From: Neoechinorhynchus agilis
Taxonomy: Eukaryota; Animalia; Acanthocephala
Length of the DNA: 64,000 nt
Assembly (NCBI GenBank): GCA_051530055.1
Contig: CM121341.1
Location: 2,260,638-2,324,637, forward strand
Reading direction: 5' to 3'
A program made the position numbers and the translations under genes. How positions within the stretch are numbered: position 1 is the first letter of the stretch; each line of letters begins with the position of its first letter. Under the pieces are notes generated by a model. The model was not told where the DNA came from. It saw only the letters and a program-made list of their open reading frames with translations, and did no database searches. This document shows, in pieces, positions 4,580 to 56,770 of the stretch.

Positions 4580-7500
4580 CTCTCACGAGAAGACTAATGA
4601 CGCAACCAAATAAACCGATTAAGTTGCGCGGAGTATTCATCCCTTCCAAAATTGTGGACATCGTCGATATTCGGATTAGTAATCCCGAATTTCATAGGAA
4701 CATTGAGCAAAAAAACAAAGAAAAAAATAATGCGAAATGATTAGCAACAATAAATTCGTATACGCCAAAACGCCTAAACAACGACAACTTTAGCGAATAA
4801 AATGTCTCAATCACGTATTCGTCGTGACATTCACGAGAAGACTAATGACGCAACCATTGAAACCGATTAAGTTGCGCGGAGTGTTCATCCCTTCTAAAAT
4901 AGTGGACAAAGTCGATACTCGGATTAGTAATTCCGAATTTCACAGGAACATTGAACAAGAAAGCAAAGAAACAATAATGATTAATGATCGCAACACCAAA
5001 TTCGTATACGTTAAGACGCCTAAACAACGGCAACTTTAGCGAATAAAATGTCTCAATCGCGTATTCGTCGTGACATTCACGAGAAGACTAATGACGCAAC
5101 CATTGAAACCGATTAAGTTGCGCGCAGTATTCATCCCTTCTAAAATAGTGGACATCGTCGATACTCGGATTAGTAATCCCGAATTTCACAGGAACATTGA
5201 ACAAGAAAGCAAAGAAACAATAATGAGAAATAATTGTAAATAGCTAATTCGTATACGCTAAGACGCCTAAACAACGGCAACTTTGGAGAATAAAATGTCT
5301 CAATGTATTCGTCGTGACATTCACGAGAAGACTAATGACGCAACCATTGAAAGCGATTAAGTTGCGCGCAGTATTCATCCCTTCTAAAATAGTGGACATC
5401 GTCGATATTCGGATAAGTAATCCCGAATTTCACAGGAACATTGAACAAGAAAGCAAAGAAACAATAATGAGAAATAATTGTAAATAGCTAATTCGTATAC
5501 GCTAAGACGCCTAAACAACGGCAACTTTGGCGAATAAAATGTCTCAATCGCGTATTCGTCGTGACATTCACGAGAAGACTAATGACGCAACCATTGAAAG
5601 CGATTAAGTTGCGCGCAGTATTCATCCCTTCTAAAATAGTGGACATCGTCGATACTCGGATAAGCCGAATTTCACAGGAACATTGAACAACAAAGCAAAG
5701 AAACAATAATGATTAATGAACGCAAACCGCAAATTCGTATACATTACGACGCTTAAACAACGACAACTTTAGCCAATAAAATGTCTCAATCACGTATTCG
5801 TCGTGCCATTCACGAAAAGACTAATGACGCAACCATTGAAACCGATTAAGTTGCGCGGAGTATTCATCCCTTCTAAAATAGTGGACATCGTCGATATTCG
5901 GATAAGTAATCCCGAATTTCACAGGAACATTGAACAAGAAAGTTAAGAAACAATAATGAGAAATGATCGAAAAGCGCAAATTCGTATACGTCAAGACGCC
6001 TAAACAACGGCAACTTTAGCGATTAAAATGTCTCAATCGCGTATTCGTCGTGACATTCACGAGAAGACGAATGACGCAACCATTGAAACCGATTAAGTTG
6101 CGCGGAGTGTTCATCCCTTCTAAAATAGTGGACATCGTCGATATTCGGATTAGTAATCCCGAATTTCACAGGAACATTGAACAAGAAAGCAAAGAAACAA
6201 TAATGATAAATGATCGCAAACAGCAAATTCGTATACGCCAAGACGCCTAAACAACGACAACTTTAGCGAATAAAATGTCTCAATCGCGTATTCGTCGTGA
6301 CATTCACGAGAAGACTAATGACGCAACCATTGAAACCGATTAAGTTGCGCGCAGTATTCATCCCTTCTAAAATAGTGGACATCGTCGATACTCGGATAAG
6401 TAATCCCGAATTTCACAGGAACATTGAACAAGAAAGCAAAGAAACAATAATGAGAAATAATTGTAAATAGCTAATTCGTATACGCTAAGACGCTTAAACA
6501 ACGGCAACTTTAGCGAATAAAATGTCTCAATCGCGTATTCGTCGTGACATTCACGAGAAGACTAATGACGCAACCATTGAAACCGATTAAGTTGCGCGGA
6601 GTGTTCATCCCTTCTAAAATAGTGGACATCGTCGATATTCGGATTAGTAATCCCGAATTTCACAGGAACATTGAACAAGAAAGCAAAGAAACAATAATGA
6701 GAAATGATCGTAAACAGCAAATTCGTATACGCTAAGACGCCTAAACAACGACAACTTTAGCGAATAAAATGTCTCAATCGCGTATTCGTCGTGACATTCA
6801 CGAGAAGACTAATGACGCAACCATTGAAACCGATTAAGTTGCGCGCAGTATTCATCCCTTCTAAAATAGTGGACATCGTCGATACTCGGATAAGTAATCC
6901 CGAATTTCACAGGAACATTGAACAAGAAAGCAAAGAAACAATAATGAGAAATAATTGTAAATAGCTAATTCGTATACGCTAAGACGCTTAAACAACGGCA
7001 ACTTTAGCGAATAAAATGTCTCAATCACGTATTCGTCGTGACATTCACGAGAAGACTAATGACGCAACCATTGAAACCGATTAAGTTGCGCGCAGTATTC
7101 ATCCCTTCTAAAATAGTGGACATCGTCGATATTCGGATAAGTAATCCCGAATTTCACAGGAACATTGAACAAGAAAGCAAAGAAACAATAATGAGAAATA
7201 TTAAATCGCAAACAGCAAATTCGTATACGCTAAGACGCCTAAACAACGACAACTTTAGCGAATAAAATGTCTCAATCGCGTATTCGTCGTGACATTCACG
7301 AGAAGACTAATGACGCAACCATTGAAACCGATTAAGTTGCGCGCAGTGTTCATCCCTTCTAAAATAGTGGACATCGTCGATATTCGGATTAGTAATCCCG
7401 AATTTCACAGGAACATTGAACAAGAAAGCAAAGAAACAATAATGAGAAATAATTGTAAATAGCTAATTCGTATGCTAAGACGCCTAAACAACGGCAACTT

Positions 7501-7770
7501 TAGCGAATAAAATGTCTCAATCACGTATTCGTCGTGACATTCACGAGAAGACTAATGACGCAACCATTGAAACCGATTAAGTTGCGCGGAGTGTTCATCC
7601 TTCTAAAATAGTGACATCGTCGATACTCGGATAAGTAATTCCGAATTTCACAGGAACATTGAACAAGAAAGCAAAGAAACAATAATGATAAATGATCGCA
7701 AACACCAAATTTGTATACGTTAAGACGCCTAAACAACGACAACTTTAGCCAATAAAATATATAAATCGCG
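4580..7770 (+). repeat. 247-bp satellite array, about 13 units
   Basis: gtgacattcacgagaagactaatgacg recurs at about 247-bp spacing (4824, ~5070, ..., 6050, 6297, 6544, 6791, 7038, ...). Confidence 0.97.
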
Positions 7771-7926
7771 TATTCATCTTCCTTGTGCTTCTGACGACAG
7801 AGGAAAGCTTTCTCTTTCTCCAAGGAAACCTTCACAGAGCGCTTTCACTTCGAAAGGTACTCAGACAATCGTCGAGTTCATGATTTCCAGATCTTCTTTT
7901 GATTCGGCAATTAATTTTTATTTCTA

Positions 7927-10618
7927 ATGAGTTCAACATTGATTTCGAGCCGTAATATTCGTCGGCCGCCTCCGTATTCTCGCTTAAACTACGCGGTTAG
8001 CCGCTTGTTCGATATTGGCTATCGTAAGTGTCCATTAACTTTTATCTGCCGTTTTTCATGGACGAAATTCAAGTGTCGAATGTTATAAAGCTCAATGTAA
8101 CTTCAACATCGAGTAGCGGCGTAAAGTTTGTTACATCCGGGAAACTTTTTATGGATACTCAAAAGGCTATCGGTGGTTTAGAGACGCGATTTGTTACAGC
8201 TGATAAAGGTAATATAAAATCTTAAAATATACATGTAAAATCTTCATCTTTTGTTCACTTCGAAGGCTTTACTTTCTCTGAGAAATGGGACACTGATAAT
8301 GTTTTGTCCTCAGAGCTTATTGTAAACGAAAATATTCTATCTCTCCGTGGCTTATCTTTGAACTTGCAACTCAAGTTGCCACTTTAAGCGAGGTTTTTTC
8401 TTTATATCTGCTTTTTGTTTTCTATTAGAATTTTTAAAAGGATTTTTTTATGATTTTTCGTAGTCGGTGTTTTATGAGTTGTTGTTCTTTGTTTACCGCA
8501 ATTTGTCCTTTAAATGTTTACAAATTGTTGATTGTTAAAAATGTTTTTCTTAATTTTTTTATGCATTTTTTTGCTTAAATGTTGACGGGGCAACACGACA
8601 AGCATCCAGGCTACAATTGAGGACGAGGACGGCTAAGCATTTTTTGCCCGATAAAGTTTTCCTCCAAGATTTTGTATGATTGTTATATCAAAAAATATAT
8701 CTTTCGTTCAAGCTTGATTTCGTGAGGATTTCTTAAATATCATACTTTATTGGAATTTTTAAACGAAACATATTGCTATCGTTTACCTTTTTATCGAAAA
8801 GGCACGAATTTTTTTTATCGAAAAATCATTTTTTCCCATTTATGAAAGTTCCGATGGTAACGGCGAAACGTTCATATCCTTCATTTTCTCGAGGATGCAT
8901 CATTCCTTTATTCCATGACAGATTCTCTAAAATGTCTCGCTGCACGGAAATAAAAATTTTAAATTATTAATATTTTTTGATTATCAGTTAACACTTTAAA
9001 AAATTATAAAAGTTCCGATGGAAACGGCGAAACGTCTTTATCGTTCGTTGCCTGGAGGATGCATAATTCCCTTTCTTAATCGCTGATTCTCTCATAAAAA
9101 ATAGTTGTTTGCATAGGGATGAAAAAAATTAATTATTAATATTTTTTGATTATCAGTTAACACTTTAAAAAATTATAAAAGTTCCGATGGAAACGGCGAA
9201 ACGTCTTTATCGGTCGTTGCCTGGAGGATGCATCATTCCCTTTCTTAATCGCTGATTCTCTCATAAAAAATAGTTGTTTGCATAGGGATGAAAAAAAGTA
9301 TAATTATTAATATTTTTTGATTATCAGTTAACACTTTAAGAAATTATAAAAGTTCCGATAGAAACGGCGAAACGTCTTTATCGGTCGTTGCCTGGAGGAT
9401 GCATAATTCCCTTTCTTAATCGCTGATTCTCTCATAAAAATAGTTGTCTGCATAGAGATGAAAAAATTAATAAATAATATTTTTTGATTATCAGTTAACA
9501 CTTTAAAAAATTATAAAAGTTCCGATGGAAACGGCGAAACGTCTTTATCGGTCGTTGCCTGGAGGATGCATAATTCCCTTTCTTAATCGCTGATTCTCTT
9601 ATAAAAAATAATTAACTGTACGGTTGCCCTTTGTTGTGGCGACGAACCATTTTCCAACTTTGTTTGGGAGAAGTTGCAAAATGTAGACAGACGGATCGAA
9701 TATTTTCCTCTTGACTTCTGTATTGATTTTTTAGTAGTAGTCTTTGTATAAATGATTTCTTAGTTCTTTTTAAAGTTCATTGTGGGTATAGCCAAGATGT
9801 TATCGGAGTCTCTTTGTTATATCTTAAATAGTTATTATTTTCTAAATGATTTTAAACAATTTTGTTTTAATTTGTCGTCCTGTTATCGATAAAACTTTAG
9901 TTTCTCTATTTTCCTATGCCCTTTTATTGATTTATGGTTAATAAAGTTTTTGTATAAATAGTTTCTTTGTACTTTTTAAAATTCATTTTGTATTTTCTCT
10001 ATTTTCTATAATCGTTCACTCGTGGCAATTTGTGTTTTAAAAGCATCATTTTCTCCAGCGACTGGCTCACGAGCTGGATCGATCAGGACGTCTTATATCA
10101 GCGATATAATTAACGCCCAAGCCGGATTCGAATTGAACCAACGACAATGGGAACCTTTGCTTACGTATTCCATAGTGACTAGTAGATTTTCTCGCGGTAG
10201 TTCGAATCTCTGGTTATTTGGTTGCTCGTTTTCATACAATTTAACCAAATCCAATTTTAAAAAAAGCAGTCTCTGCATTGGGTTCGATGCATCGGACTTT
10301 AGCGTGAGAACAAGTCTTGAGAATCAATCCGATGTTTGTGCATCTCTCATTCATTCGGTGAATCCGAGACTTCAAACTGGTGTTCAAATGAAATGGAATC
10401 CGAATTCAGACAAGACAAATCTGTATTTTGCTGCTTGTTATGAAGTGGACCCATCTCTCTCCCTTAAAATCAAAATCGCGAATTTAAGACATATCGGCAT
10501 TTCATGTACCCATGCATTGAGGCCTGGAGTGGCGCTTACAATGTCAACCAATTTGGATAGTTTAAATATCAATCAAGGAGATCATAAACTCGGATTTGGA
10601 ATCGACGTACAATGCTAA
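7927..10618 (+). CDS. VDAC: Divergent voltage-dependent anion channel (porin); exons 7927-8023, 8074-8208, 8266-~8387, ~10044-10618; exon 3/4 junction unresolved
   Basis: PPPYSRL..AVSRLFDIGY, GVKFVTSG, GFTFSEKWDTDN, SFSPATG, LRPGVALTMS..D..NINQGDHKLGFG are colinear with VDAC. Introns of 50 and 57 bp are GT-AG. In-frame TAA at 8385-8387. Confidence 0.85.
8845..9610 (+). repeat. About 169-bp satellite (about 4.5 units) inside the long VDAC intron
   Basis: agttccgat at 8847, 9011, 9180, 9351, 9518. Confidence 0.95.
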
Positions 10619-11179
10619 ATATATTCGTACTATCGACAGCTTTTTTCTAGAATATTGACCGTTTCTTTAAGTTCCTTAATTGAGTTTAGTATCTATGTAA
10701 ATTGCACTATTTATCGAGAATTAGTGATGTATTCTGTTTTTATTTTTAAAGCTACTTTAGTTTTTTGAGAACGTTTTAAAAGATGCATTCGTATGTAAGC
10801 ACTTGATCATTTTTTAATCTTTCATTTCCTGGAATCTAAATTGTAGTTTTCCCCTGCGAAACCAATTGCACTTTATTGCCTTGTTTTTTTTGTTTTTTTT
10901 CAGGCTAATTAACGTTCCTTCTAAATTGTAAAAGTACGGATTATGTCGTTATTTTTTTGATCAAAAACATCAATAGAATATGGATATGTCAAGTGCCGGG
11001 CTATATGATAAGAATTATTCTATTTTAAGTTTTAATGGCAAGCCGATTTGTTTCATGTAATCCTTAAATTTCAGTTTATCCCTTATATCCGGCTTATTTT
11101 TTAAGGCATAAAGCCAAACCAATTACAAATGCACGGTCCAGAGTTTGTAAGAATCCCTCCGGATTCTTAGATACCTCCC

Positions 11180-11290
11180 GAGAAGGCGGGACTCATCAGT
11201 GAGTTTCCTCCCTTCAGCGAGATATTTCGTCCCCTTTGGTTGTGCGTCATTGGCGGTAGAGGATTCGAACCAGTTGACCCTTAACTGAGT
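11180..11290 (-). mobile_element. tRNA-derived SINE fragment
   Basis: Reverse complement agggtcaactggttcgaatcctctaccgccaatgacgcacaaccaaa contains a B box and matches 16660-16710. Confidence 0.6.
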
Positions 11291-11294
11291 GCGA

Positions 11295-11430
11295 AGGTAA
11301 ATAATTACTTTTATCAAAAACGTTTCGAATCTCGACGGGTTCAGCATCAGTCTGTTAATTATTAAAAGACGATAACTTACAAACTGATGATGAGCCTGAC
11401 GAGGTTCGAAACGTTTTTTCATTAAAGTTA
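11295..11430. mobile_element. Palindromic element made of two head-to-head Penelope terminal repeats
   Basis: Minus-strand ctgatgctgaacccgtcgagattcgaaacgttt (11316-11350), a 33-bp spacer, then plus-strand ctgatgatgagcctgacgaggttcgaaacgttt. Confidence 0.75.
11381..11418 (+). ncRNA. Candidate minimal type I hammerhead ribozyme
   Basis: aaa-CTGATGA-t-gagcct(gacg)aggttc-GAAAC-GTT-ttt: core boxes, 6-bp stem II, palindromic ACGT helix III and a short A/U stem I. Confidence 0.6.
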
Positions 11431-11705
11431 TAACTCAATCTTATTAATTATTCATAGCTGAATTTTAGATTTACACGAAACTTGGAATTTCTAAAAGCTT
11501 TTTCAGTGTAAAGCACGAGTTCTTTGTTTATCAGATTCTTTGATCTCGTTGTCAGCGCTGTAATTTTAACGGATTCGCTCTATTTAATTTTAGTAATAAA
11601 TCAAAGGTTCACGCGTAAAGAACTTGTTCAAAAATTAACGACGAAAAAGTTCGTAGCTTAAAAGAAAATTGTGTATATAAATCTGCACTTCCTTTAAATT
11701 TGTGT

Positions 11706-11910
11706 AAGCTCAACATTTGATCAAGTTTAATGTCCTAATCAGTTCTACAGATCGTACAGTGGGCGATGCTCCCCTAATTGTTTTATAAACGGCCTCGTAG
11801 TTATTATTTGTTCGAAAAAGAATATTTAAGCTCAACATTTGATCAAGTTTAATGTCCTAATCAGTATTAAAGACCTTACAATGGACGATGCTCGCCTAAT
11901 TGTTTTATAG
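11706..11910. repeat. 122-bp direct duplication (2 copies)
   Basis: aagctcaacatttgatcaagtttaatgtcctaatcagt at 11706 and 11828. Confidence 0.85.
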
Positions 11911-12008
11911 ATATTTAATCTAACCAAACATCGTAAGTACCCTCAGTAAACACAAAATAAACCGCTGTTCGTTGATTTAAAGCATGAAATAACGCTGCAG
12001 TGCGTCTC

Positions 12009-12911
12009 TCATTCATGCAAGTTTATATGGAGACTTAACTTCCTTCCATAACGTGGGTCTTTAACTACTTGATCGATAAAATCAGTCGTGTTAACTTGTT
12101 TTGTCGTAGTCTCCGTTCTCTCTATGGTAGTCGTTTCTTGTCTACCTACATGAAATCCATCAGATTGTGGACGATTCTGTTGATATCCCTGAAATCCGAA
12201 CTGCTGATTTGCCACGGGCATTTGTTGCCCAAAAGGAGAATATGACTGTTGATTTAAATGAGTATATTGAACCGGTGGGTATCCGACTTTAGGCGAATAT
12301 AGCGGACTCTGTTGCTGTAAACCAAATGGAGTTTGTTGTCCGTACATCTGCTGGCTTTGTAGGAACACTCCTTGTTGTTGGTACGGCGGCATTCCAGTCT
12401 GCTGTTGATATTGGGGATATTGCGTCAAAGGTTGAGAATAACCTCTTGATGCCATTGTCTGTTGAACGAACGATGAAGTATTACTGTTCACATTATAGAT
12501 GGTATTGAACGATTGCAGTATCATGGACATGTCTTGCTCATTCAATTGTTGTGGAACCTGACCATCAAAACGCGCCTGAATATAGAATTGAAGTTTATCA
12601 CGTGGATCCGCTGCTCCATGCACCATTGCATAAGCTATAATAAACTCATTGAACGTAAGGAATCCATTTTTATCAATATCTATCGCCTCAAACATTCTAT
12701 CACTCATGTCGCGTGTAACTGGTCCATGAGGAAACGCATTTGTAGACCGATAGTAATTGTAAAAATCATTTCGCGACATTCGACCGTCTCTCGATGCAGC
12801 ACTCATGAACTCTACACGCATTTGATTGATATTTTCACGCGGGATTTTCCCATACTTAGCAATAGCCTCCACTTCGAGATCGTTTCTTAACACTTTGTAT
12901 GTATTGCCCAT
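12009..12911 (-). CDS. N-myristoylated neuronal-calcium-sensor-like EF-hand protein with Q/P/Y-rich insertion, 300 aa
   Basis: Starts MGNT (myristoylation-type); RMFEAIDIDKNGFLTFNEF is a canonical EF loop; DKLQF and DFIDQVVKDP resemble NCS/recoverin helices. Intronless ORF. Confidence 0.75.
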   Translation of the reverse strand: MGNTYKVLRNDLEVEAIAKYGKIPRENINQMRVEFMSAASRDGRMSRNDFYNYYRSTNAFPHGPVTRDMSDRMFEAIDIDKNGFLTFNEFIIAYAMVHGAADPRDKLQFYIQARFDGQVPQQLNEQDMSMILQSFNTIYNVNSNTSSFVQQTMASRGYSQPLTQYPQYQQQTGMPPYQQQGVFLQSQQMYGQQTPFGLQQQSPLYSPKVGYPPVQYTHLNQQSYSPFGQQMPVANQQFGFQGYQQNRPQSDGFHVGRQETTTIERTETTTKQVNTTDFIDQVVKDPRYGRKLSLHINLHE

Positions 12912-13194
12912 CTTGAGAGTTATAACAACCAAACGAGTACAAATTTAACTCGCTTATATGTACCTCACGAGTTTTGTTATGACTTATACGAATGTTTATG
13001 AACTTGGTTTTTAATGTATCTTAACCAAAACACGTCCAAAAATAGGCCTTTGCGATAGGCAAAAATATGCAGTCTAAGATTTTTAGATGTGTTTTTTTAG
13101 TTTACAACTCGCTCTTATCTAGAGTCCTAAAGAGTTAAATTTAAAGCTACATACTTTTAATTTTTTTTAAATTAAACAAGTTTTTTAAACCATT

Positions 13195-13490
13195 AAATTT
13201 TATTAAAGTACAAAACGTGCAATCACCACCGTCCGCAAAATCTTAGCTTCTCTCCTTCCTCGGCTGTCGCTATCACGCTGGCAGCATTGCCTCGTTGTAC
13301 TGCGAGCGAGATATTTTGTCGAAGGAATACGCCTGCTCTTGAGTCTCCGGTTGCCTCTCTCAATTTCTCCGAGAGATCCTGGAGCAGAGTGCCGAGCTGC
13401 TAAGGGCTCTATACGTCTCTACTCCGAAGGAGACAAAATAATGGGCAATGCTAATTCTCCCTTCCGCTGCACCTCCAGCGATTTCGAGAG
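13195..13490 (-). mobile_element. CRE-clade retrotransposon 3' end
   Basis: Near-identical reverse complement of 28066-28335; encodes the FVPFGVET...RQNISLAVQRGNAASV region. Confidence 0.85.
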
Positions 13491-13830: not shown

Positions 13831-14689
13831 CCAAAGAGGTCGACGCGGCTTAAAAAATTGACCAAAAACTACGGTTCAAAAATACACGATTTCTTAAATC
13901 AAACTTTCGAAAGCCTGAAATCACATATATATAAAAGATTTATTGTAAATAAAAACATCTTAACGTGAATAGAGATTTATCGTTCGAGCTTTCCAACGAA
14001 ATGGCATGTTTCTGATTTTATCGAACATATTCTCTTAATGCATCGTAGTCGAAATTAAATAAAGCAAAACTCCAATTACCGCATAATAAAATATTTAATC
14101 TGGAAATGCTTCAAGTGTTTTAGCAGCAAACCACGAATAATGTGACAAATCCGTCCAATGCACTCATCGTAAATTTGATTAAAATATTTTCTCAAATCGT
14201 ATTTTGATACTAAACTCACAGTTGTTTAATCGGCTTTAAGGATGGCCGTCCTATTATTATCCTCAAGGGAATACTGTCGAGAATTGCACCGTCAATCTTT
14301 GTCTCAACTTTCGTTGTGGCAATGATTAACAAATTAGTGAAAGATTTGAGCATGTAGATTTGTCCAGTAAAAGTATTAATGATCCGCAAGTATTCAATCC
14401 CGGAACTCTTCTTAAAATGATCGCGGTATTCAATTCCAGATTTAAGAATTTGTGAGAAATTGATAGTTCAATAATTTAAAATAACATATTTTTAACCATG
14501 AAGAATTTTTAAGGACCAAAATAAACAATTAAAAATGGATGAATTCTTGAACCAAATCGGTGGGCTGTGTGTCCAAAAGAAAATTATTAGCCGTGAAATA
14601 GGCTACACATAGAAACTTAATAAAAATCACCGGCTACCCAGACAAAATAAGAGATTCTTGTCTTGGATCATTATTTTTGGGGGAAAAGA

Positions 14690-14912
14690 GACTTTCTTTT
14701 GGTAGTTTTTCCACCACGAATTTAAATTCATTAATTTATTTCTGATATTTCACGTCGGATAATTCAGACATCTTTATCAAGGTTTGTTATTGCTTGTAAA
14801 GTTTTTGACGGAGGATCCCACAAGTCGATTTGTTGTTGTATAACGGCGACAAAAATTATGTAAATTTATTAAATCGATATTTCGGCATAATAAATTTACA
14901 TAATTTTTGTCG
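14690..14912. repeat. MITE half-copy (14690-14800) followed by a perfect 24-bp-stem hairpin (14847-14912)
   Basis: 14690-14800 matches the left half of 3729-3928; cgacaaaaattatgtaaatttatt / aataaatttacataatttttgtcg is a perfect inverted repeat. Confidence 0.7.
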
Positions 14913-17623: not shown

Positions 17624-17832
17624 ATTTTTTATTGGTTAAATTATGTTTTTCGAAACATGGTGTTTTTTTGGGGAAAAACAAGATAAACAATAAATGTTTT
17701 TTGTTTGCCTTCAAAACTCCAAACAATAAGAAAAACATATTTGGACGGAAAATGCTTGTAGTCTGAAACGAGTGTTACTTAAGAATATCTTGCATCCATC
17801 CCAAACTCCTACAGATTTATCGATAGCACCTA

Positions 17833-18721
17833 ATGAATCCTACAACGTTCAAAGCATTGAGTTTCGCAATTGCGATGTTGTTCTTTGTTACTTCAATTTT
17901 AAGCTGGATTTCAACATGCAACCATCATCCGTGGACGCGAGTTCCAAATACGAATTTCGCCATTGGAATCTTCGGCCATTCATACAGAAATAAGACATCG
18001 CTTTTGCCTCCGATTTACTTCCTTCTCATTGAAAGTAAGTTTCCTTCTTGTTTCTTTTATAAAATTCCTTTCGTTAGGAAAACTAATAGGCACGTTGCTG
18101 GTTATGAGCGCCGGATTCGAAATTGCGGCTTTTCTTATGGCCGTATTTCATTTTGTATCCCAAGGACGAGTGCGGATCTTGTGGCTGCAAGTTTCCTCGG
18201 TCCTTGGACAAATCTCTTGTAAGTAAATTTTTAAAATCGGCCTTCCGTTTAATCCGTTTATTTTTCAGTGACCTTCCACGCTTTCGGAATGGGATTCTTC
18301 GTATTTTTTGTGAAAGAAAAATCTCATCAATTCTGCTATACATTTTATTTATCGATTGCATGTGGTTTAATTTCGATTATTTCCGTTATGGCTTCGCAAA
18401 TCGCTACGTTCATCCTGGGAACGAATTTATTTCGATTATTTGGCGACGGATTCATTGCTGGGCGATCAAAGCGTCAGAGAAGGTTAGCCATTTTTTAGCT
18501 GACAATTTTTCGCCAAAAAATTTAGAACATTTAGAACGAATTCTGCTGTCGATCCGTTTTCAAAAAATATCTCAAATATGGAACAAGTCATAGAAGCTTG
18601 CGAGCCATTAATAAAGGATTTTGCCGACGAAAAACCAATTCGGATTTTCCAAAAATGGAACGATTCTGATTCGATCGAAATGGATTCTTTAAATTCTCAA
18701 GAACATATTATTAGAATTTAA
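17833..18721 (+). CDS. Four-TM claudin/PMP22-superfamily-like membrane protein, 250 aa; exons 17833-18034, 18078-18218, 18269-18482, 18526-18721
   Basis: Three GT-AG introns (43, 50, 43 bp) give an open 753-nt CDS with four hydrophobic segments. The first loop has W...GIF, resembling the claudin W-GLW signature. Family call is inference. Confidence 0.7.
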
Positions 18722-18949
18722 TGTGCAAAAAGCACTTCAAATAAAGTATAAAACTTTCCGGTCACTTTTATTTACATTTCAACAAAATATTATTTTTGTC
18801 TTTGTGTTTCGTTGCTTAAATTGAGACTGAACGTTTTCACCCATTTTTAGTGTTCAAAAAGAATAATTCGATCCATAAGATAAAAATTCCCGAATGTCAA
18901 ATTTAAGAAACACGATCAATTCAAGCGATTGAGTTGAAGCAAAAGCCTT

Positions 18950-28335: not shown

Positions 28336-28356
28336 AACGGTTTTTTAAAAGTACAA

Positions 28357-43352: not shown

Positions 43353-43830
43353 TCAACTGAGCGTAGTTTCAGTAAACGAAAATATAAATAGTTTATACTG
43401 TTTTGGGGCGATGGGAAACTCAATAAGACCAAATAAATAGCTAATGCGAAGCCGTAATGCTTTCTTACAGGAAGGTAGTTTCAAATAAAATCCGTTCGAG
43501 ACAATTTTCATTTTATTTTTCGTTTCTTGCCTATGTCTCAAGCGAGTTACGATGCACGCCATAAAACTAATGATAATCAAAACAGACAATACAATTGCAC
43601 CAATAATCAATATCCAATTGGTGCTTCTTGGCACCGCTTTTCGGGATGCAATGTTTTTAGACATTATTGAATCATCTGCTAGACGAGTTGAAGCTATCGT
43701 TGATTCTGTAGTCGACGACGTTGATCTTTCAGTTGTTGCAGTCTTAAATGTAATTGGCGCTTTTGTTGCTGTTGTAAACAATTCGACAGCATCTAAACAA
43801 ACAAAAGATTCATTGACTTTCAACGCTTCT
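43353..43830 (-). CDS. C-terminal part of a type I membrane protein (Thr/Ser stalk, TM, basic tail); 5' exons not identified
   Basis: TTATKAPITFKTATTERSTSSTTES, then WILIIGAIVLSVLIIISFMACIV, then RLRHR. Confidence 0.55.
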
Positions 43831-45959: not shown

Positions 45960-47290
45960 CAGCCTTACAAGTCCTCAAACAGGCACAAATCAGGTCTCGG
46001 GGCACGGTAAGACACTATGCAACGGACAATGCTTCTCATTAAATTTTTCATAGCACGAAGATAGCGTCAATTGTGCTTCTACCTGGCATAAAGCCGCGCT
46101 GGTCTTCGCTGATTTGGATCTCCTCCCAAATCCTATTGTCAACCATTCGCTCCCCAATTTCATTGTGTGGGACATCACCTTGATGTCCTACACAATTCCC
46201 AAGATGATTTTGGCTTCCCGAAGGATAACTTCAGCCGTCTCATCCCACCAGGTTTCTACTTAGACTACGTCCTCGCTTAGTTTCTGGGGGAGCACAATCA
46301 CAATCTTTTCTTTGAGGGTAGGATCTTTTAGCTTCCACCACTTGATGTTTGCCTTTTACCCTAATCCTGAGGTCGGCCACGAGTAATCTATGTTGCATCG
46401 CACACTCTTGACATTCCAGACTTCGCCCCACTTCGCTATCGGGTACAAAATGAAATTGATTTGATCTTCCACCACTTGAGTATGTGTGTAGGTGCCGTGG
46501 GGCTTTTTTGAAATTAAGTATTCGAAATACGCAACTCCAACGCTGTTGTATAATCCAACAGTCTTACATCCTCGGCGTTCCTTGATCCTACACTGTGTCC
46601 TCCATGAATTCGCTCGTATTCATCTCTCGGTCCAACGGGCCCGTTGAAATCGCCAGTTATCACATATCTTTCCCCTATAGTCCTTGTCAATTCAGATAGA
46701 TCCAGCCAAAATTCATCTTTCTCCTCCTCGCTGCAATCGACCTGCGGGGCGTATGCAGCCACTACTGTCGTGATTTCACCACTCTCGTTTCTCCTCACCA
46801 CCAAAACTCGATCACTTGTTCTTTTCACTTCCATTACATCGTCGACTAGGTCTTTAGCGATTACAATACTGACCCCATTTCTACCACTTGTTCCGCCACT
46901 ATAAATTAGTTTATAACCTTCTCCAACTTCTTTAGCCTTGCGTATTTTCCATCGTAGTTCTTCTATCCCGAGTATCTGAATTTTTCTTCTGCTCATCAAA
47001 TCGACCACTTCTCGACTTCTCCCTGTCATAAAACCAATTCTTATTTTTATGACGACTCGTTTCTTTAGCCAGGCCCGTCGCTTACCCGGTAACCCTAATT
47101 CATTTTTCGCATCCTCCGGGCGCCGAGTCTGCGCGTCGCATAAGGGGTATGCCCTTGTCAGATCGTTCGAAATTAAAGAACTTGACATTGGCATAGATAG
47201 TTTTGGCACAGGGTTTTAAGGCCGGATGCCCTTCCTGACGTCAACCCTCCCCATTTGTCCGGGCTTGGGACCGGCACCGAGTTTCCCCGA
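45960..47290 (-). mobile_element. Degenerate RTE-clade LINE (APE domain plus RT fragment)
   Basis: EELRWK, GYKLIYSG...RNGVSIVI, AYAPQV, GDFNG, MSHTMKL. Confidence 0.88.
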
Positions 47291-47640: not shown

Positions 47641-48025
47641 ATAATAAAGGAATCTTTAACCGGGATTACGCTCACCAACTTTAAACGTTGATGCTCATCG
47701 TTTTTTACGGCGAAAATTCCTATACAATGACCATCTACAAAATTAGGACCCATTCGATAAACTTCTTTGAATTTAGAAATAAAACTCTAAGTTACATCAT
47801 CGTAGTCTGGGCAAAAAATGGCACTATTTTGGTGAGGTATTTACCTAAAAAGTTTCGTTTTCTCATAAAAGAGCGAGTACACAACGCGAATAATACAGAG
47901 GAATGTCACACGAACTCGAATATTTAAAAACTTACAAGCAGTAAGTATTGGCGAGCAGCCAAAGCCCAATGACGACCAAAGATGCGATTGCATCTCAGAG
48001 GGCACATTGAAGAAATGAAAGATAA

Positions 48026-48950
48026 TTAAACTCTCGAATCGTTGTGATTGACATAAAATGCGGTGTTCTTCACTGAAATCAAAAATTTGGAAGCTGCGGT
48101 CGCAAAAATTAAAATGCATTTGGCAAGTAATTTGAAAAGGATTTCTCGAAGAAATTGAGAGGCAACCGGAGACTCAAGAGCAGGCGTATTCCTTCGACAA
48201 AATATCTCGCTGGCAGTACAACGAGGCAATGCTGCCAGCGTGATGGCGACGGTCGAGGAAGGACAAAAGCTGGAATTTGCCGGGAGGTGGTGAGTGTGTT
48301 AATTGTCGAGAAATGAAGATTGATTGAATTTCAAAAAAAATTCTTCGATTAAACTCTCGAATCGTTGTGATTGGCATAAAATGCGGTGTTCTTTACTGAA
48401 ATCAAAAAAATTTGGAAGCTGCGGTCGCAAAGATTAAAATGCATTTGGCAAGTAATTTGAAAAGGATTTCTCGAAGAAATTGAGAGAGGCAACCGGAGAC
48501 TCAAGAGCAGGCGTATTCCTTCGACAAAATATCTCGCTGGCAGTACAACGAGGCAATGCTGCCAGCGTGATGGCGACGGTCGAGGAAGGACAGAAGCTGG
48601 AATTGGCCGGGAGGTGGTGAGTGTGTTAATTGTCGAGAAATGAAGATTGATTGAATTTCAAAAAAATTCTTCGATTAAACTCTCGAATCGTTGTGATTGG
48701 CATAAAATGCGGTGTTCTTTACTGAAATCAAAAAAATTTGGAAGCTGCGGTCGCAAAGATTAAAATGCATTTGGCAAGTAATTTGAAAAGGATTTCTCGA
48801 AGAAATTGAGAGAGGCAACCGGAGACTCAAGAGCAGGCGTATTCCTTCGACAAAATATCTCGCTGGCAGTACAACGAGGCAATGCTGCCAGCGTGATGGC
48901 GACGGTCGAGGAAGGAGAGAAGCTAAGATTTGGCGGGAGGTGGTGAGTGT
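48026..48950 (+). repeat. 325-bp tandem array (about 3 copies) of a CRE 3' end plus flank
   Basis: aaggatttctcgaagaaattg at ~48137, ~48462, ~48787; tail matches the reverse complement of 61555-61760. Confidence 0.92.
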
Positions 48951-49874
48951 GTTTCAAACGGATTGTTAACCTTTACTAAAATGTTATTAATGAAATTAAC
49001 GACATTAAAAAAATATACAAAACAATTATGAAAGTTTCATGTTGTGTTGCAGTCTCAGGCTTAGTTTCTTTTTCGAGAAACCACTTTCTTTAAAAACGAT
49101 ACGAATTTGCACCCTCTTTGGAATCGCGCTCGGAAAACTCCCTTTCCCATTTTTTTAAAAGCGCTCACCCATCGGAATTGATGCTTTTCTGCTCGCTTTA
49201 AAGTGTACGCTTCGTGTTTATGTATTAAAAGAAACAAAATTGTGCTTGGTTATTGTTTTTGAAAACGCAGGGATCTAAGTCAATTTCTCTTAAACGTGAA
49301 ATGAACGAAGTCCGGGAAAAAGGCTCGCTTATAAGAACTTAAAACAATGTCACACTTAAAAATATGAAGATGAAACTTCTGGATTCATTTTCAAGTTCGA
49401 TTTGCAAGAAATAAAGGTACTGTGAAATTAAAAAATTGCTTTAAGAGAACAGCCATAAAAATAAACGATCAATGCAACCATCGACGGAAATTGTTCATCA
49501 ACTCTGTATCGAAATTTACCGTTGGCGTGTGCAATTATTAGTCATTTTAGAAGATTTAATTTCGAAAAACACCAAAATTGTAATTGCATTTACGATAGGT
49601 CACTGGTCCGCTAAAGTAATTCCAACCAATAATAATCTGAATTTTCCTCTTATCACTTACAAAAACCTACTAAAAAATTTGTTTAATTTTTTGAATCAAA
49701 TGTGTTTTAAAAATTTCACAGCGGTGTCTATCACAACCAGCAGGATTTGCTAATGCTAAATATGTACTTTTGTCATGATTTTTGAATTTTTTTATTTTTT
49801 TATTAATATTTATAATTTTGATGTTTCAAAAACCTCCTAGAGGTCCACACCCGGTAAATTATTATTTATTATAG

Positions 49875-50030
49875 ATTTTTCGAACATTGTCGGGTTCATC
49901 ATCAGCTTGCTAGTTGTCGTCTTTTAATAACTTACAGCGGTTCGAAACGTTTTTTAATAAAAATTATTTACCGAGTGGAGACCTAAACAATAATTCTTAT
50001 CATATAGCCCGGCACTTGACATATCCATAT
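49875..50030. mobile_element. Penelope-terminal-repeat palindrome copy, partly deleted
   Basis: Same spacer as 11350-11383 (ttattaaaagacga on the minus strand), flanked by gggttcatcatcag and ggttcgaaacgttt, ending in the terminal repeat. Confidence 0.7.
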
Positions 50031-50390
50031 TCTATTGATGTTTTTGATAAAAAAATAACGACATAATCCGTACTTTTACAATTTAGAAGGAACGTTAATT
50101 AGCCTGAAAAAAAAACAAAAAAAACAAGGCAATAAAGTGCAATTGGTTTCGCTGGGGAAAACTACAATTTAGATTCCAGGAAATGAAAGATTAAAAAAAT
50201 GATCAAGTGCTTACATACGAATGCATCTTTTAAAACGTTCTCAAAAAACTAAAGTAGCTTTAAAAATAAAAACAGAATACATCACTAATTCTCGATAAAT
50301 AGTGCATTTTACATAGATACTAAACTCAATTAAGGAACTTAAAGAAACGGTCAATATTCTAGAAAAAAGCTGTCGATAGTACGAATATAT

Positions 50391-53300
50391 TTAGCATTGT
50401 ACGTCGATTCCAAATCCGAGTTTATGATCTCCTTGATTGATATTTAAACTATCCAAATTGGTTGACATTGTAAGCGCCACTCCAGGCCTCAATGCATGGG
50501 TACATGAAATGCCGATATGTCTTAAATTCGCGATTTTGATTTTAAGGGAGAGAGATGGGTCCACTTCATAACAAGCAGCAAAATACAGATTTGTCTTGTC
50601 TGAATTCGGATTCCATTTCATTTGAACACCAGTTTGAAGTCTCGGATTCACCGAATGAATGAGAGATGCACAAACATCGGATTGATTCTCAAGACTTGTT
50701 CTCACGCTAAAGTCCGATGCATCGAACCCAATGCAGAGACTGCTTTTTTTAAAATTGGATTTGGTTAAATTGTATGAAAACGAGCAACCAAATAACCAGA
50801 GATTCGAACTACCGCGAGAAAATCTACTAGTCACTATGGAATACGTAAGCAAAGGTTCCCATTGTCGTTGGTTCAATTCGAATCCGGCTTGGGCGTTAAT
50901 TATATCGCTGATATAAGACGTCCTGATCGATCCAGCTCGTGAGCCAGTCGCTGGAGAAAATGATGCTTTTAAAACACAAATTGCCACGAGTGAACGATTA
51001 TAGAAAATAGAGAAAATACAAAATGAATTTTAAAAAGTACAAAGAAACTATTTATACAAAAACTTTATTAACCATAAATCAATAAAAGGGCATAGGAAAA
51101 TAGAGAAACTAAAGTTTTATCGATAACAGGACGACAAATTAAAACAAAATTGTTTAAAATCATTTAGAAAATAATAACTATTTAAGATATAACAAAGAGA
51201 CTCCGATAACATCTTGGCTATACCCACAATGAACTTTAAAAAGAACTAAGAAATCATTTATACAAAGACTACTACTAAAAAATCAATACAGAAGTCAAGA
51301 GGAAAATATTCGATCCGTCTGTCTACATTTTGCAACTTCTCCCAAACAAAGTTGGAAAATGGTTCGTCGCCACAACAAAGGGCAACCGTACAGTTAATTA
51401 TTTTTTATAAGAGAATCAGCGATTAAGAAAGGGAATTATGCATCCTCCAGGCAACGACCGATAAAGACGTTTCGCCGTTTCCATCGGAACTTTTATAATT
51501 TTTTAAAGTGTTAACTGATAATCAAAAAATATTAATAATTAATTTTTTCATCCCTATGCAAACAACTATTTTTATGAGAGAATCAGCGATTAAGAAAGGG
51601 AATTATGCATCCTCCAGGCAACGACCGATAAAGACGTTTCGCCGTTTCCATCGGAACTTTTATAATTTTTTAAAGTGTTAACTGATAATCAAAAAATATT
51701 AATAATTAATTTTTTCATCCCTATGCAGACAACTATTTTTATGAGAGAATCAGCGATTAAGAAAGGGAATTATGCATCCTCCAGGCAACGACCGATAAAG
51801 ACGTTTCGCCGTTTCCATCGGAACTTTTATAATTTTTTAAAGTGTTAACTGATAATCAAAAAATATTAATAATTAATTTTTTCATCCCTATGCAAACAAC
51901 TATTTTTATGAGAGAATCAGCGATTAAGAAAGGGAATGATGCATCCTCCAGGCAACGAACGATAAAGACGTTTCGCCGTTTCCATCGGAACTTTTATAAT
52001 TTCTTAAAGTGTTAACTGATAATCAAAAAATATTAATAATTAATTTTTTTTCATCCCTATGCAAACAACTATTTTTTATGAGAGAATCAGCGATTAAGAA
52101 AGGGAATGATGCATCCTCCAGGCAACGACCGATAAAGACGTTTCGCCGTTTCCATCGGAACTTTTATAAATTTTTAACGTGTTCATTGATAATAAAAAAA
52201 TATTAATAATTAATTTTTTTCATCCCTATGCAAACAACTATTTTTTATGAGAGAATCAGCGATTAAGAAAGGGAATGATGCATCCTCCAGGCAACGACCG
52301 ATAAAGACGTTTCGCCGTTTCCATCGGAACTTTTATAAATTTTTAACGTGTTCATTGATAATCAAAAAATATTAATAATTAATTTTTTTATCCCTATGCA
52401 AACAACTATTTTTTATGAGAGAATCAGCGATTAAGAAAGGGAATTATGCATCCTCCAGGCAACGAACGATAAAGACGTTTCGCCGTTTCCATCGGAACTT
52501 TTATAATTTTTTAAAGTGTTAACTGATAATCAAAAAATATTAATAATTTAAAATTTTTATTTCCGTGCAGCGAGACATTTTAGAGAATCTGTCATGGAAT
52601 AAAGGAATGATGCATCCTCGAGAAAATGAAGGATATGAACGTTTCGCCGTTACCATCGGAACTTTCATAAATGGGAAAAAATGATTTTTCGATAAAAAAA
52701 ATTCGTGCCTTTTCGATAAAAAGGTAAACGATAGCAATATGTTTCGTTTAAAAATTCCAATAAAGTACAATATTTAAGAAATCCTCACGAAATCAAGCTT
52801 GAACGAAAGATATATTTTTTGATATAACAATCATACAAAATCTTGGAGGAAAACTTTATCGGGCAAAAAATGCTTAGCCGTCCTCGTCCTCAATTGTAGC
52901 CTGGATGCTTGTCGTGTTGCCCCGTCAACATTTAAGCAAAAAAATGCATAAAAAAATTAAGAAAAACATTTTTAACAATCAACAATTTGTAAACATTTAA
53001 AGGACAAATTGCGGTAAACAAAGAACAACAACTCATAAAACACCGACTACGAAAAATCATAAAAAAATCCTTTTAAAAATTCTAATAGAAAACAAAAAGC
53101 AGATATAAAGAAAAAACCTCGCTTAAAGTGGCAACTTGAGTTGCAAGTTCAAAGACAAGCCACGGAGAGATAGAATATTTTCGTTTACAATAAGCTCTGA
53201 GGACAAAACATTATCAGTGTCCCATTTCTCAGAGAAAGTAAAGCCTTCGAAGTGAACAAAAGATGAAGATTTTACATGTATATTTTAAGATTTTATATTA

Positions 53301-53583
53301 CCTTTATCAGCTGTAACAAATCGCGTCTCTAAACCACCGATAGCCTTTTGAGTATCCATAAAAAGTTTCCCGGATGTAACAAACTTTACGCCGCTACTCG
53401 ATGTTGAAGTTACATTGAGCTTTATAACATTCGACACTTGAATTTCGTCCATGAAAAACGGCAGATAAAAGTTAATGGACACTTACGATAGCCAATATCG
53501 AACAAGCGGCTAACCGCGTAGTTTAAGCGAGAATACGGAGGCGGCCGACGAATATTACGGCTCGAAATCAATGTTGAACTCAT
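50391..53583 (-). CDS. VDAC: Second VDAC copy with the same exon structure and the same in-frame TAA (53123-53125)
   Basis: ATG at 53581-53583; last-exon protein identical to 10022-10618. Confidence 0.85.
51410..52670 (-). repeat. About 169-bp satellite, about 7.5 units
   Basis: catcggaact at ~51482, 51649, 51816, 51983, 52153, 52322, 52490, 52654. Confidence 0.95.
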
Positions 53584-53749
53584 TAGAAATAAAAATTAAT
53601 TGCCGAATCAAAAGAAGATCTGGAAATCATGAACTCGACGATTGTCTGAGTACCTTTCGAAGTGAAAGCGCTCTGTGAAGGTTTCCTTGGAGAAAGAGAA
53701 AGCTTTCCTCTGTCGTCAGAAGCACAAGGAAGATGAATACGCGATTTAT

Positions 53750-56700
53750 ATATTTTATTGGCTAAAGTTGTCGTTGTTTAGGCGTCTTAACGTATACAAA
53801 TTTGGTGTTTGCGATCATTAATCATTATTGTTTCTTTGCTTTCTTGTTCAATGTTCCTGTGAAATTCGGAATTACTTATCCGAGTATCGACGATGTCCAC
53901 TATTTTAGAAGGGATGAACACTGCGCGCAACTTAATCGGTTTCAATGGTTGCGTCATTAGTCTTCTCGTGAATGTCACGACGAATACGTGATTGAGACAT
54001 TTTATTCGCCAAAGTTGTCGTTGTTTAGGCGTCTTAACGTATACGAATTTGCGGTTTGGGATCATTTCTCATTATTGTTTCTTTGTTTTCTTGTTCAATG
54101 TTCCTGTGAAATTCGGGATTACTTATCCGAATATCGACGATGTCCACTATTTTAGAAGGGATGAACACTGCGCGCAACTTAATCGGTTTCAATGGTTGCG
54201 TCATTAGTCTTCTCGTGAATGTCACGACGAATACGTGATTGAGACATTTTATTCGCTAAAGTTGCCGTTGTTTAGGCGTCTTAGCGTATACGAATTTATG
54301 TTACAATTATTTCTCATTATTGTTTCTTTGCTTTCTTGTTCAATGTTCCTGTGAAATTCGGAATTACTAATCCGAATATCGACGATGTCCACTATTTTAG
54401 AAGGGATGAACACTCGCGCAACTTAATCGGTTTCAATGGTTGCGTCATTAGTCTTCTCGTGAATGTCACGCGAATACGCGATTGAGACATTTTATTCGCT
54501 AAAGTTGCCGTTGTTTAGGCGTCTTAGCGTATACGAATTTGCTGTTTACGATTATTTCTCATTATTGTTTCTTTGCTTTCTTGTTCAATGTTCCTGTGAA
54601 ATTCGGGATTACTAATCCGAATATCGACGATGTCCACTATTTTAGAAGGGATGAATACTCCGCGCAACTTAATCGGTTTCAATGGTTGCGTCATTAGTCT
54701 TCTCGTGAATGTCACGACGAATACGCGATTGAGACATTTTATTCGCTAAAGTTGCCGTTGTTTAGGCGTCTTAGCGTATACGAATTAGCTATTTACAATT
54801 ATTTCTCATTGTTGTTTCTTTGCTTTCTTGTTCAATGTTCCTGTGAAATTCGGGATTACTTATCCGAGTATCGACGATGTCCACTATTTTTAGAAGGGAT
54901 GAACATTCCGCGCAACCTAATCGGTTTCAATGGTTGCGTCATTCGTCTTCTCTTGAATGTCACGACGAATACGCGATTGAGACATTTTAATCGCTAAAGT
55001 TGCCGTTGTTTAGGCGTCTTGACGTATACGAATTTGCGCTTTTCGATCATTTCTCATTATTGTTTCTTAACTTTCTTGTTCAATGTTCCTGTGAAATTCG
55101 GGATTACTTATCCGAATATCGACGATGTCCACTATTTTAGCAGGGATGAATACTCCGCGCAACTTAATCGGTTTCAATGATTGCGTCATTAGTCTTTTCG
55201 TGAATGGCACGACGAATACGTGATTGAAACATTTTATTGGCTAAAGTTGTCGTTGTTTAAGCGTCGTAATGTATACGAATTTGCGGTTTGCGTTCATTAA
55301 TCATTATTGTTTCTTTGCTTTGTTGTTCAATGTTCCTGTGAAATTCGGCTTATCCGAGTATCGACGATGTCCACTATTTTAGAAGGGATGAATACTGCGC
55401 GCAACTTAATCGCTTTCAATGGTTGCGTCATTAGTCTTCTCGTGAATGTCACGACGAATACGCGATTGAGACATTTTATTCGCCAAAGTTGCCGTTGTTT
55501 AGGCGTCTTAACGTATACGAATTTGGTGTTTGCGATCATTAATCATTATTGTTTCTTTGCTTTCTTGTTCAATGTTCCTGTGAAATTCGGGATTACTTAT
55601 CCGAATATCAACGATGTCCACTATTTTAGAAGGAATGAATACTGCGCGCAACTTAATCGCTTTCAACGGTTGCGTCATTAGTCTTCTCTTGAATGTCACG
55701 ACGAATACACGATTGAGACATTTTATTTGCTAAAGTTGCCGTTGTTTAGGCGTCTTCGCGTATACGAATTAGCTATTTACAATTATTTCTCATTATTGTT
55801 TCTTTGCTTTCTTCTTCAATGTTCCTGTGAAATTCGGGATTACTAATCCGAGTATCGACGATTTCCACTATTTTAGAAGGGATGAATACTGCGCGCAACT
55901 TAATCGCTTTCAATGGTTGCGTCATTAGTCTTCTCGTGAATGTCACGACGAATACGCGATCGAGACATTTTATTCGCCAAAGTTGCCGTTGTTTAGGCGT
56001 CTTAGCGTATACGAATTAGCTATTTACAATTATTTCTCATTATTGTTTCTTTGCTTTCTTGTTCAATGTTCCTGTGAAATTCGGGATTACTAATCCGAAT
56101 ATCGACGATGTCTACAATTTTAGAAGGAATGAATACTGCGCGCAACTTAATCGGTTTCAATGGTTGCGTCATTAGTCTTCTCGTGAATGTCACGACGAAT
56201 ACGCAATTTAGACATTTTAATCGCTAAAGTTGTCGTTGTTTAGGCGCTTTAACGTATGCGAATTTGCGGTTTTCGATCATTTCTCATTATTGTTTCTTTA
56301 CTTTCTTGTTCAATGTTCCTGTGAAATTCGGAATTACTTATCCGAGTATCGACGATGTCCATTATTTTAGAAGGGATGAATACTGCGCGCAACTTAATCG
56401 GTTTCAATGGTTGCGTCATTAGTCTTCTCGTGAATGTCACGACGAATACGCGATTGAGACATTTTATTCGCCAAAGTTGCCGTTGTTTAGGCGTCTTAGC
56501 GTATACGAATTAGCTATTTACAATTATTTCTCATTGTTGTTTCTTTGCTTCCTTGTTCAATGTTCCTGTGAAATTCGGGATTATTTATCCTAATATCGAC
56601 GATGTCCACAATTTTAGAATGGATGAAAACTCCGCGCAACTTAATCGGTTTCAATGGTTGGGTCATTAGTCTTCTCGTGAATGTCACGACGAATACGCGA

Positions 56701-56770
56701 TTGAGTCATTTTATTCGCTAAAGTTGCCGTTGTTTGGGCGTCTTAACGTATATTAATTTGCGCTTTTCGG
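53750..56770 (-). repeat. 247-bp satellite array, about 12 units
   Basis: Reverse complement of the 4580-7770 unit at about 247-bp spacing. Confidence 0.97.

Follow-up and report, generated by a model that had tools for sequence, protein, structure and literature searches.

A VDAC-bearing inverted duplication in Neoechinorhynchus agilis with breakpoints in satellite arrays and beside hairpin elements: a possible case of satellite-primed copying

Results

In a 64,000-nucleotide window of chromosome CM121341.1 (bases 2,260,638-2,324,637; chromosome length 19.4 Mb) from the assembly GCA_051530055.1 of the acanthocephalan Neoechinorhynchus agilis, the gene for VDAC, the eukaryotic porin, is present twice, within two nearly identical inverted arms placed around a 39-kb spacer. 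We propose, with a confidence that we put near even, that this VDAC palindrome may represent a recent inverted segmental duplication made by satellite-primed copying. The original prediction had left the choice between a recent inverted duplication and an ampliconic palindrome whose similarity is maintained by conversion between the arms. The former fits all the sequence evidence described below, whereas the latter was not demonstrated, there being only two copies and a long spacer.

Both an inverted-repeat search and gapped self-BLAST clearly showed the left arm (positions 4583-11019 of the window, plus strand) to be the reverse complement of the right one (56776-49989, i.e., 49989..56776 on the minus strand), which bears out the inverted arms predicted earlier at 4580-11019 and 49989-56770. 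The arms are 6.4-6.8 kb in length, and the spacer between them (11020-49988) is six times as long. Both were found to possess, as had been foreseen, the whole VDAC gene along with two satellites; the order within each arm is a 247-bp satellite array, 151 bp of unique sequence, VDAC with a 167-169-bp satellite in its long intron, and 400 bp of the 3′ flank. Strict near-identity, as delimited by a monomer matrix and register alignment, is confined to a core of about 5.5 kb (5502-11019 on the left, 55511-49989 on the right). When the unique sequence was compared (7776-8837 plus 9614-11019, 2,468 bp in total), the arms differed by 5 substitutions (at 8354, 8741, 8742, 10702 and 10855 in the left-arm coordinates) and 3 one-base indels (10809, 10892 and 10959), giving an identity of 99.8% by substitutions and 99.7% by all differences. 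Five of these eight differences fall in the last 320 bp by the inner junction (P = 0.0015), with none in the preceding 1,087 bp. The inner edge of homology is sharp to the base, between 11019 and 11020 on the left and between 49989 and 49988 on the right, and the sequences flanking the arms on all four sides are unique and mutually unrelated. Both copies thus surpass the 1 kb and 90% identity required of an inverted segmental duplication, and they lie inverted on one chromosome, each in unique surroundings. No tRNA or other non-coding RNA genes were found at the breakpoints.

The VDAC gene itself is annotated differently in the two arms. The left copy (7927-10618, plus strand) is represented by the 268-aa model ACOME3_000432, and the right copy (50391-53583, minus strand) only by a 117-aa fragment, ACOME3_000440 (53123-53583). 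A brute-force splice search yielded a four-exon model of 295 aa (7927-8023, 8074-8208, 8266-8346 and 10044-10618), where the third exon, seen on translating the region (GFTFSEKWDTDNVLSSELIVNENILSL), is absent from the annotation. This conserved exon is skipped in ACOME3_000432, and in ACOME3_000440 it is read through into a stop at 8385-8387 (left-arm coordinates). The 295-aa model aligns with Pfam Porin_3 over positions 2-271 of 271 (168.9 bits), and the 268-aa model gives 140.5 bits split in two stretches. A longer exon 3 retaining the residues GLSLNLQ was rejected, since no canonical donor lies in frame for it; 8346 (GT) and 8349 (GC) are the sole in-frame choices. The coding sequence is identical in both copies, such that they encode the same protein under every model. 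The single-nucleotide polymorphism at 8354 (A/G), which had been described as synonymous, indeed exchanges TTA for TTG (Leu) in the right 117-aa model, but it is intronic in the 268-aa and 295-aa models. In the annotated proteome, as represented in a collection of 5.8 billion proteins, only two N. agilis VDAC models are present, which indicates that the gene exists in two copies rather than as an amplicon family; a word-indexed search gave 1 hit, the VDAC sequences of relatives being too divergent to be matched by it.

The satellites differ between the arms in copy number, again in line with what had been noted before. The satellite in intron 3, revealed by self-BLAST and tandem-repeat comparison, consists of about 4.6 units on the left (8838-9613, plus strand) and about 7.6 units on the right (51396-52672, minus strand), the right one being longer by 502 bp, or three units. 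The 247-bp satellite forms a left array of 13.0 copies (4583-7775, plus strand; monomers L1-L13) and a right array of 12.3 copies (about 53732-56776, minus strand; monomers R12 to R0). To compare them, both arrays were cut into monomers, which were aligned all against all and in register. Monomers inside one array diverge by 5-12%, and the collinear inter-arm pairs L5=R6, L6=R7, L9=R9, L12=R10 and L13=R12 are 98.8-99.6% identical (R9 also matches L11), thus indicating that an already diversified array was copied as a block. The stretch L7-L12 is an ABABAB dimer expansion with B′ABA′ as its right counterpart, and the arrays have diverged after copying by gain and loss of monomers.

In the outward direction, near-identity ceases within a monomer, at 5502 on the left and 55511 on the right, and the satellite runs on at both sides. 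The monomers beyond this point (L1-L4 and R0-R5) are 86-97% alike, are not mutual best matches and have no positional counterparts, so that the outer 0.9-1.3 kb or so of each arm is similar only at the level of the satellite family. At the outermost position of each array stands its most divergent monomer (L1 on the left and R0 on the right), which fits old array edges. On the simplest reading of these sequences, satellite arrays would have been resident at both sites before the event, with the outer junction made within the satellite homology.

Furthermore, the right-hand array adjoins a second young duplication. A 268-aa open reading frame (ORF) located just outside the right arm was found by product look-up to be present twice on the chromosome. 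Sequence comparison showed that the outer flank of the right arm (56755-60911, plus strand), which carries this ORF (57505-58311) and an EF-hand gene (59378-60055, 225 aa), is repeated in direct orientation about 55 kb downstream, with 99.5% identity in unique sequence. The second copy lies in a downstream stretch of CM121341.1 designated L002, at about 9223-13406; with the flanking satellite included, the duplication spans 55916-60911 in the window and 8383-13406 in L002 (about 2,371,862-2,376,885 on the chromosome). The downstream copy is preceded by a third array of the 247-bp satellite, comprising 3.5 monomers about 93% like the right array, and the perfect identity of the direct duplication begins at 56755, inside the last partial monomer. 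In other words, the right-hand array is bordered on either side by a young duplication that starts in the satellite. The outer end of the left array (4583) and the inner end of the downstream array (L002 8383) lie within the same 24-nt monomer stretch (GTTGCGTCATT.GTCTTCTCGTGA), which resembles one array split with a 24-nt overlap; the probability of such a coincidence by chance is about 0.1-0.2, and it may mean nothing.

In the right-hand copy, the opposite ends of both duplications lie next to hairpins. The right inner end of the VDAC duplication (49989) is 4 nt from MITE-a (49841-49984), a hairpin element of about 145 bp resembling miniature inverted-repeat transposable elements (MITEs) and recognized by hairpin and family comparison. 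The end of the direct duplication (60911) is 5 nt from MITE-b (60917-61155), a near-perfect 239-bp palindrome and the strongest hairpin of the window, with 109-nt arms, a 21-nt loop and a folding energy of -161.7 kcal/mol (RNA parameters). A k-mer scan gave about nine hairpin elements in the 64 kb, so two junctions beside hairpins would be expected by chance with a probability of about 4e-5, a post-hoc estimate. The simple later insertion of a MITE at the inner junction was considered and rejected: homology does not resume beyond the MITE. The nearest left MITE copy is 277 bp from the inner junction and only 83% alike. Further members of the MITE-a family, which are about 150 bp long, lie at 11296-11431, 19534-19706, 25631-25748, 31928-31987 and 38348-38386, as well as at 1144-1359 of L002. 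MITE copies abut or neighbour several repeat boundaries, namely, the inner end of the right arm, the start of a repeat at 38387-39227, and an insertion in the right copy of an inner inverted pair (see below). Stretches weakly related to MITE-b are present at 3710-3935 and 14661-14806.

Altogether, about 120 kb of the chromosome contains three young duplications, whose substitution levels are 0.20% for the inverted VDAC arms, 0.44% for the direct duplication and 0.82% for the inner inverted pair. This clustering of duplications of similar age and mixed orientation, with breakpoints beside hairpins or in the 247-bp satellite, is what template switching would be expected to leave.

The distribution of differences along the arms allows us to consider whether the palindrome is in fact old and has been kept near-identical by recurrent arm-to-arm conversion, with only the edges escaping and showing its true age. 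The arms may indeed serve as substrates for such conversion, which is mechanically possible. Identity peaks in the arm interior and drops at both edges: the inner edge bears the cluster of differences described above, and towards the outer edge the monomer identity drops from 99.6% through about 97% and 92% to 86-89% in the registers tried. In addition, the arrays gained at least four monomer-level indels while the unique sequence was held at 99.8%. However, the outer monomers lack reciprocal best matches and thus look non-orthologous rather than like old orthologues. Satellite arrays rearrange far faster than point mutations build up, so the monomer indels do not require great age. An ampliconic palindrome would have arms that are long relative to the spacer, and multi-copy genes, whereas here we see only two copies, one gene per arm and 39 kb of spacer. 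Conversion also leaves both the hairpin-adjacent ends and the second duplication unexplained, and in a single genome a young duplication is indistinguishable from an old one maintained in this way. We therefore regard conversion of an old palindrome as quite unlikely. The differences clustered by the non-homologous junction fit either error-prone repair synthesis or a conversion that is poor at the edges.

It was also necessary to consider whether the palindrome might be a product of the assembly, with one arm, or the whole 10.9-kb block 49989-60911, being an uncollapsed haplotype or structural variant from the pool that was stitched in near the true locus. The assembly is a draft built from Oxford Nanopore Technologies (ONT) and Illumina reads of a pool of about 50 worms, with Hi-C scaffolding (reads and RNA-seq of N. 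agilis: PMC12690905). MaSuRCA/Flye, purge_dups, instaGRAAL (which writes contig junctions as 10 N), manual curation and TGS-GapCloser were used to build it. Such a pooled sample and such tools make a stitched-in haplotype conceivable, and the arm divergence of 0.2-0.4% is within the allelic range. The arm ends coincide with satellite and hairpins, which are frequent points of contig breakage; in a genome of 46 Mb with 1.8-2.7% of BUSCOs duplicated, it is unusual to see three near-identical duplications in 120 kb; and the right-hand block lies between its look-alikes, just where Hi-C would place a chimeric haplotig.

The anatomy of the locus argues against this explanation. Not a single N was found at any of the six junctions in about 87 kb (the window together with stretches L001-L004), although contig joins are written as 10 N and the finished assembly (contig N50 482 kb) retains 0.9 N per 100 kb, or about 40 gaps genome-wide. 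Gaps closed by TGS-GapCloser are not recognisable from the sequence, yet reads should not permit the closing of a false adjacency. The ONT input amounted to 4.17 Gb in reads of at least 5 kb, i.e., about 90x for a genome of 46.2 Mb, so the 6.5-kb arms could be spanned. The homology spans a single gene and breaks off sharply in unique sequence, with no contig-scale collinear block; the flanks are different single-copy genes, each present once; and neither of the look-alike loci shows collinearity with the 10.9-kb block on the right. The outer monomers are 3-14% apart, far beyond allelic divergence, and for both "filled" alleles to be the majority paths some haplotypes would have to carry both. 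A haplotype misjoin is thus a legitimate worry, but judging by the sequence it fits the anatomy poorly; it appears less likely than a real duplication, and we hold it to be unlikely. A related possibility, an inversion polymorphism of the pool threaded into one path, was discarded by reasoning only, as it cannot yield the junction between 49988 and 49989. The right block as a source of straight copies, or as a chimera of its look-alikes, was rejected as well, for R0-R5, L1-L4 and T1-T4 would be unexplained in the absence of resident arrays. Exact-product look-ups of the window proteins returned N. agilis matches only in GCA_051530055.1, no soft-masking is present in the window, and no karyotype or sex-chromosome information was found in the N. 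agilis genome paper.

The spacer was characterized by protein look-ups and profile searches, and it contains genes, fragments of long-terminal-repeat (LTR) retroelements and long interspersed nuclear elements (LINEs), and three tandem arrays. Six single-copy genes were placed, out of about seven that would lie between the VDAC copies judging by the locus tags. These are an EF-hand gene (12009-12932, minus strand), an annotated 247-aa gene (17833-18721, plus strand), PheRS alpha (from 20606, plus strand), peroxiredoxin (23981-24580, minus strand), a calmodulin-like gene (36722-37192, plus strand), and a large gene without a Pfam domain (39888-43664, minus strand; annotated as 935 aa, longest ORF 867 aa). 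Profile matches revealed a reverse-transcriptase fragment (29122-29715), an integrase (minus strand) beside a gag zinc-knuckle/aspartyl protease (plus strand) at 33945-36233, and a fragment of a LINE-type endonuclease (46514-47209). All of these matches are short and broken, and no intact retroelement was found within the spacer. In the window as a whole, four further tandem arrays of 2-5.5 copies each lie at 1897-2365 (period 237 bp), 26709-27816 (203 or 399 bp), 30157-31594 (578 bp) and 48025-48953 (326 bp); short arrays of long-period satellites are unusually abundant for so compact a genome.

The inverted arms around a block with retroelement debris have the geometry of a giant transposon of 52 kb with the arms as its terminal inverted repeats. 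Nevertheless, no target-site duplication was found on comparing 4582/4583 with 56776/56777, and the arm tips, which ought to be identical, are the least similar parts; these two results effectively refute a giant transposon. Moreover, the arms carry a housekeeping gene, and the spacer consists of ordinary single-copy genes with no intact transposase, the integrase, gag/protease and reverse-transcriptase matches being short fragments. We assign this explanation virtually no probability.

The original prediction also mentioned a second inverted pair nested inside the first. Self-BLAST showed that such a pair does exist within the spacer, comprising 17676-19178 (plus strand), which holds the 247-aa gene, and 30295-33289 (minus strand), where no gene is annotated, but it is not concentric with the large one, the axes being at about 25.5 and 30.5 kb. 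The pair (17676-19178 vs. 33289-30295) is 99.1% identical over 1.1 kb, with 9 substitutions, and its right copy is enlarged by the 578-bp tandem repeat and a MITE insertion. A concentric second palindrome was rejected on account of the axis being about 5 kb off, which indicates that the inner pair is a separate duplication. Its right copy bears a second, unannotated copy of the 247-aa gene (32243-33131, minus strand), 99.1% identical and with one residue change in a 156-aa ORF, which has no Pfam match. A larger, older palindrome with a decayed middle was rejected too: the inner flanks share only dispersed repeats in mirror order, and this lack of any other mirror homology speaks against it. 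No more than a generic relationship was seen among the three EF-hand genes in the vicinity of the arms (best E about 1e-4).

A third inverted pair, 38387-39227 and 61599-62448, has 95% identity over 0.85 kb. Its end of 160-230 bp is a dispersed repeat, which is also present at 13187-13459, 28017-28343 and L002 19408-19623 and is embedded in the 326-bp tandem array. This repeat probably represents a transposon family, and no Pfam match was obtained for its ORFs.

Discussion

In this work, we described an inverted duplication of the VDAC locus whose outer junction lies in a satellite and whose inner junction lies beside a hairpin. The satellite-primed copying that we favour may have proceeded as follows. 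Two oppositely oriented arrays of the 247-bp satellite would already have been present about 50 kb apart, and a broken or stalled DNA end in one of them would have paired with the other. Break-induced or synthesis-dependent repair, accompanied by template switching, would then have extended the copy outwards across VDAC, and the copying would have been terminated by a non-homologous join, which in the right-hand copy is located 4 nt from MITE-a. The hairpin might have served as an obstacle that stopped copying in the donor, or as a fragile site in the recipient. The copying could have run from left to right or from right to left. The direct duplication that holds the 268-aa ORF and the EF-hand gene, with its end 5 nt from a hairpin, might have arisen by a like event at the opposite side of the right-hand array.

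Several points weigh against satellite-primed copying. Its support comes from the sequence of one draft assembly of pooled worms that passed through purge_dups, instaGRAAL and gap closing, and satellites and hairpins also break contigs, so that a biological mechanism is not the only possible source of such a breakpoint pattern. The gene models of both VDAC copies are unlike (268 aa vs. 117 aa), and the coincidence with hairpins was spotted post hoc. Finally, an appearance of resident arrays could also result from a simple duplication whose outer monomers then turned over rapidly.

Among the alternatives that require one event only, the most economical is an inversion of 45 kb by staggered breaks, with the arms as its by-product: VDAC and part of the satellite would lie within a stagger of about 6 kb, and the other break would be clean, at the MITE-a terminus beside the forkhead flank. 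Once filled in and end-joined, the staggered stretch would be present twice, as inverted copies at either end of the inverted segment. Such an inversion would account for the whole palindrome at once, and its signature is present, the copies being situated exactly at both ends of one segment and inverted. A break at the terminus of a MITE is plausible, and inversions in the Atlantic herring are flanked by inverted duplications of several kilobases (PMC11499932). However, staggered breaks predict a straight copy up to the break, whereas L1-L4 have no 99% counterparts in the right array and the satellite continues past the near-identity on both sides. In Drosophila, the duplications of such origin are at most about 1.9 kb long, with a median of 321 bp, mostly decayed and with 88% identity (Ranz et al. 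2007; PMC1885836); the duplication described here is about 5.5-6.5 kb long at 99.8%, with homology fading inside a continuing satellite. The direct duplication that shares the satellite is left unexplained. Taking both sides into account, we find an origin by staggered breaks improbable.

The satellite-primed copying that we prefer may be extended to a broader reading of the region, where the 247-bp arrays would be launch pads for ectopic copying and the hairpin MITEs would be stop signs. The right-hand array would have exchanged gene segments on both its sides with arrays 39 kb and 55 kb away and would thereby have produced both the VDAC palindrome and the direct two-gene duplication, the arms would be homogenised by conversion, the orientation of the spacer would be polymorphic, and the whole would constitute a recurrent, sequence-defined route of duplication. 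Taken jointly, these propositions are tentative, and we are doubtful that all of them hold.

Analogous structures are known from other systems. Replication-based complex rearrangements in human genomic disorders are attributed to fork stalling and template switching or microhomology-mediated break-induced replication (FoSTeS/MMBIR), with duplication-inverted triplication-duplication (DUP-TRP/INV-DUP) among their products. The locus in N. agilis resembles them in having inverted and direct duplications of similar age in cis, one junction in repeat homology and one non-homologous, breakpoints by sequences that form secondary structure, and extra mutations near a junction. Unlike the human cases, it is a germline-fixed, or at least assembled, structure in an invertebrate.

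In the palindromes of the Y chromosome, the arms range from 9 kb to 1.45 Mb and the spacers are comparatively short. These palindromes carry testis gene families, and conversion between their arms was proven by cross-species comparison. The human and ape palindromes P1-P8, as cited in PMC7953838 from Rozen et al. 2003, possess gene-bearing inverted arms of high identity. The VDAC arms are likewise inverted and gene-bearing with very high identity, but they contain one housekeeping gene and are separated by a spacer six times their length.

The likeness to inverted repeats that mediate inversions is close as well. Human inverted low-copy repeats flank unique segments and can flip them. Inversion breakpoints in the Atlantic herring bear inverted duplications of 3-60 kb, which show that arms of this kind are able to flip the segment between them (PMC11499932). 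In both of these cases and in N. agilis, a gene-bearing segment has at its two ends inverted copies on the kilobase scale, 95-99% identical and with one gene or none, on which non-allelic homologous recombination can act to invert the segment. The arms described here are shorter, the spacer is only 39 kb, and one end is a satellite and the other a hairpin, with an inversion polymorphism as a candidate only. Nevertheless, judging from the arrangement of the arms, it is mechanically plausible that recombination between them could invert the spacer without breaking any gene.

Within Syndermata, there is a cautionary precedent. The palindromes reported for the rotifer Adineta vaga in 2013 were multi-gene collinear blocks that resulted from scaffolded phased haplotypes, and they were gone in the chromosome-level assembly (PMC8494291). 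As in that case, we deal with gene-bearing inverted repeats in a draft genome from this clade, and instaGRAAL and purge_dups were also used for the later AV20 assembly of that species. In contrast to the blocks of A. vaga, the repeat in N. agilis comprises one gene, is gapless and has unique flanks. Should it nevertheless prove to be an artefact, it would serve as a warning for draft genomes from pooled individuals, all the more so as assembly palindromes in this clade once misled the thinking on asexual evolution.

The locus is of note chiefly for its breakpoints. It offers a clean natural example of satellites and hairpin elements marking the breakpoints of duplications, and it is a candidate for a small inversion polymorphism. 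The annotation of VDAC has consequences of its own: given an exon-skipping model of 268 aa in one arm and a model of 117 aa in the other, estimates of VDAC gene count and expression would be wrong or split between the copies. If the duplication is true, N. agilis would carry two identical copies of the VDAC that is apparently the only one it has, and this protein is the main gate in the outer membrane of mitochondria.

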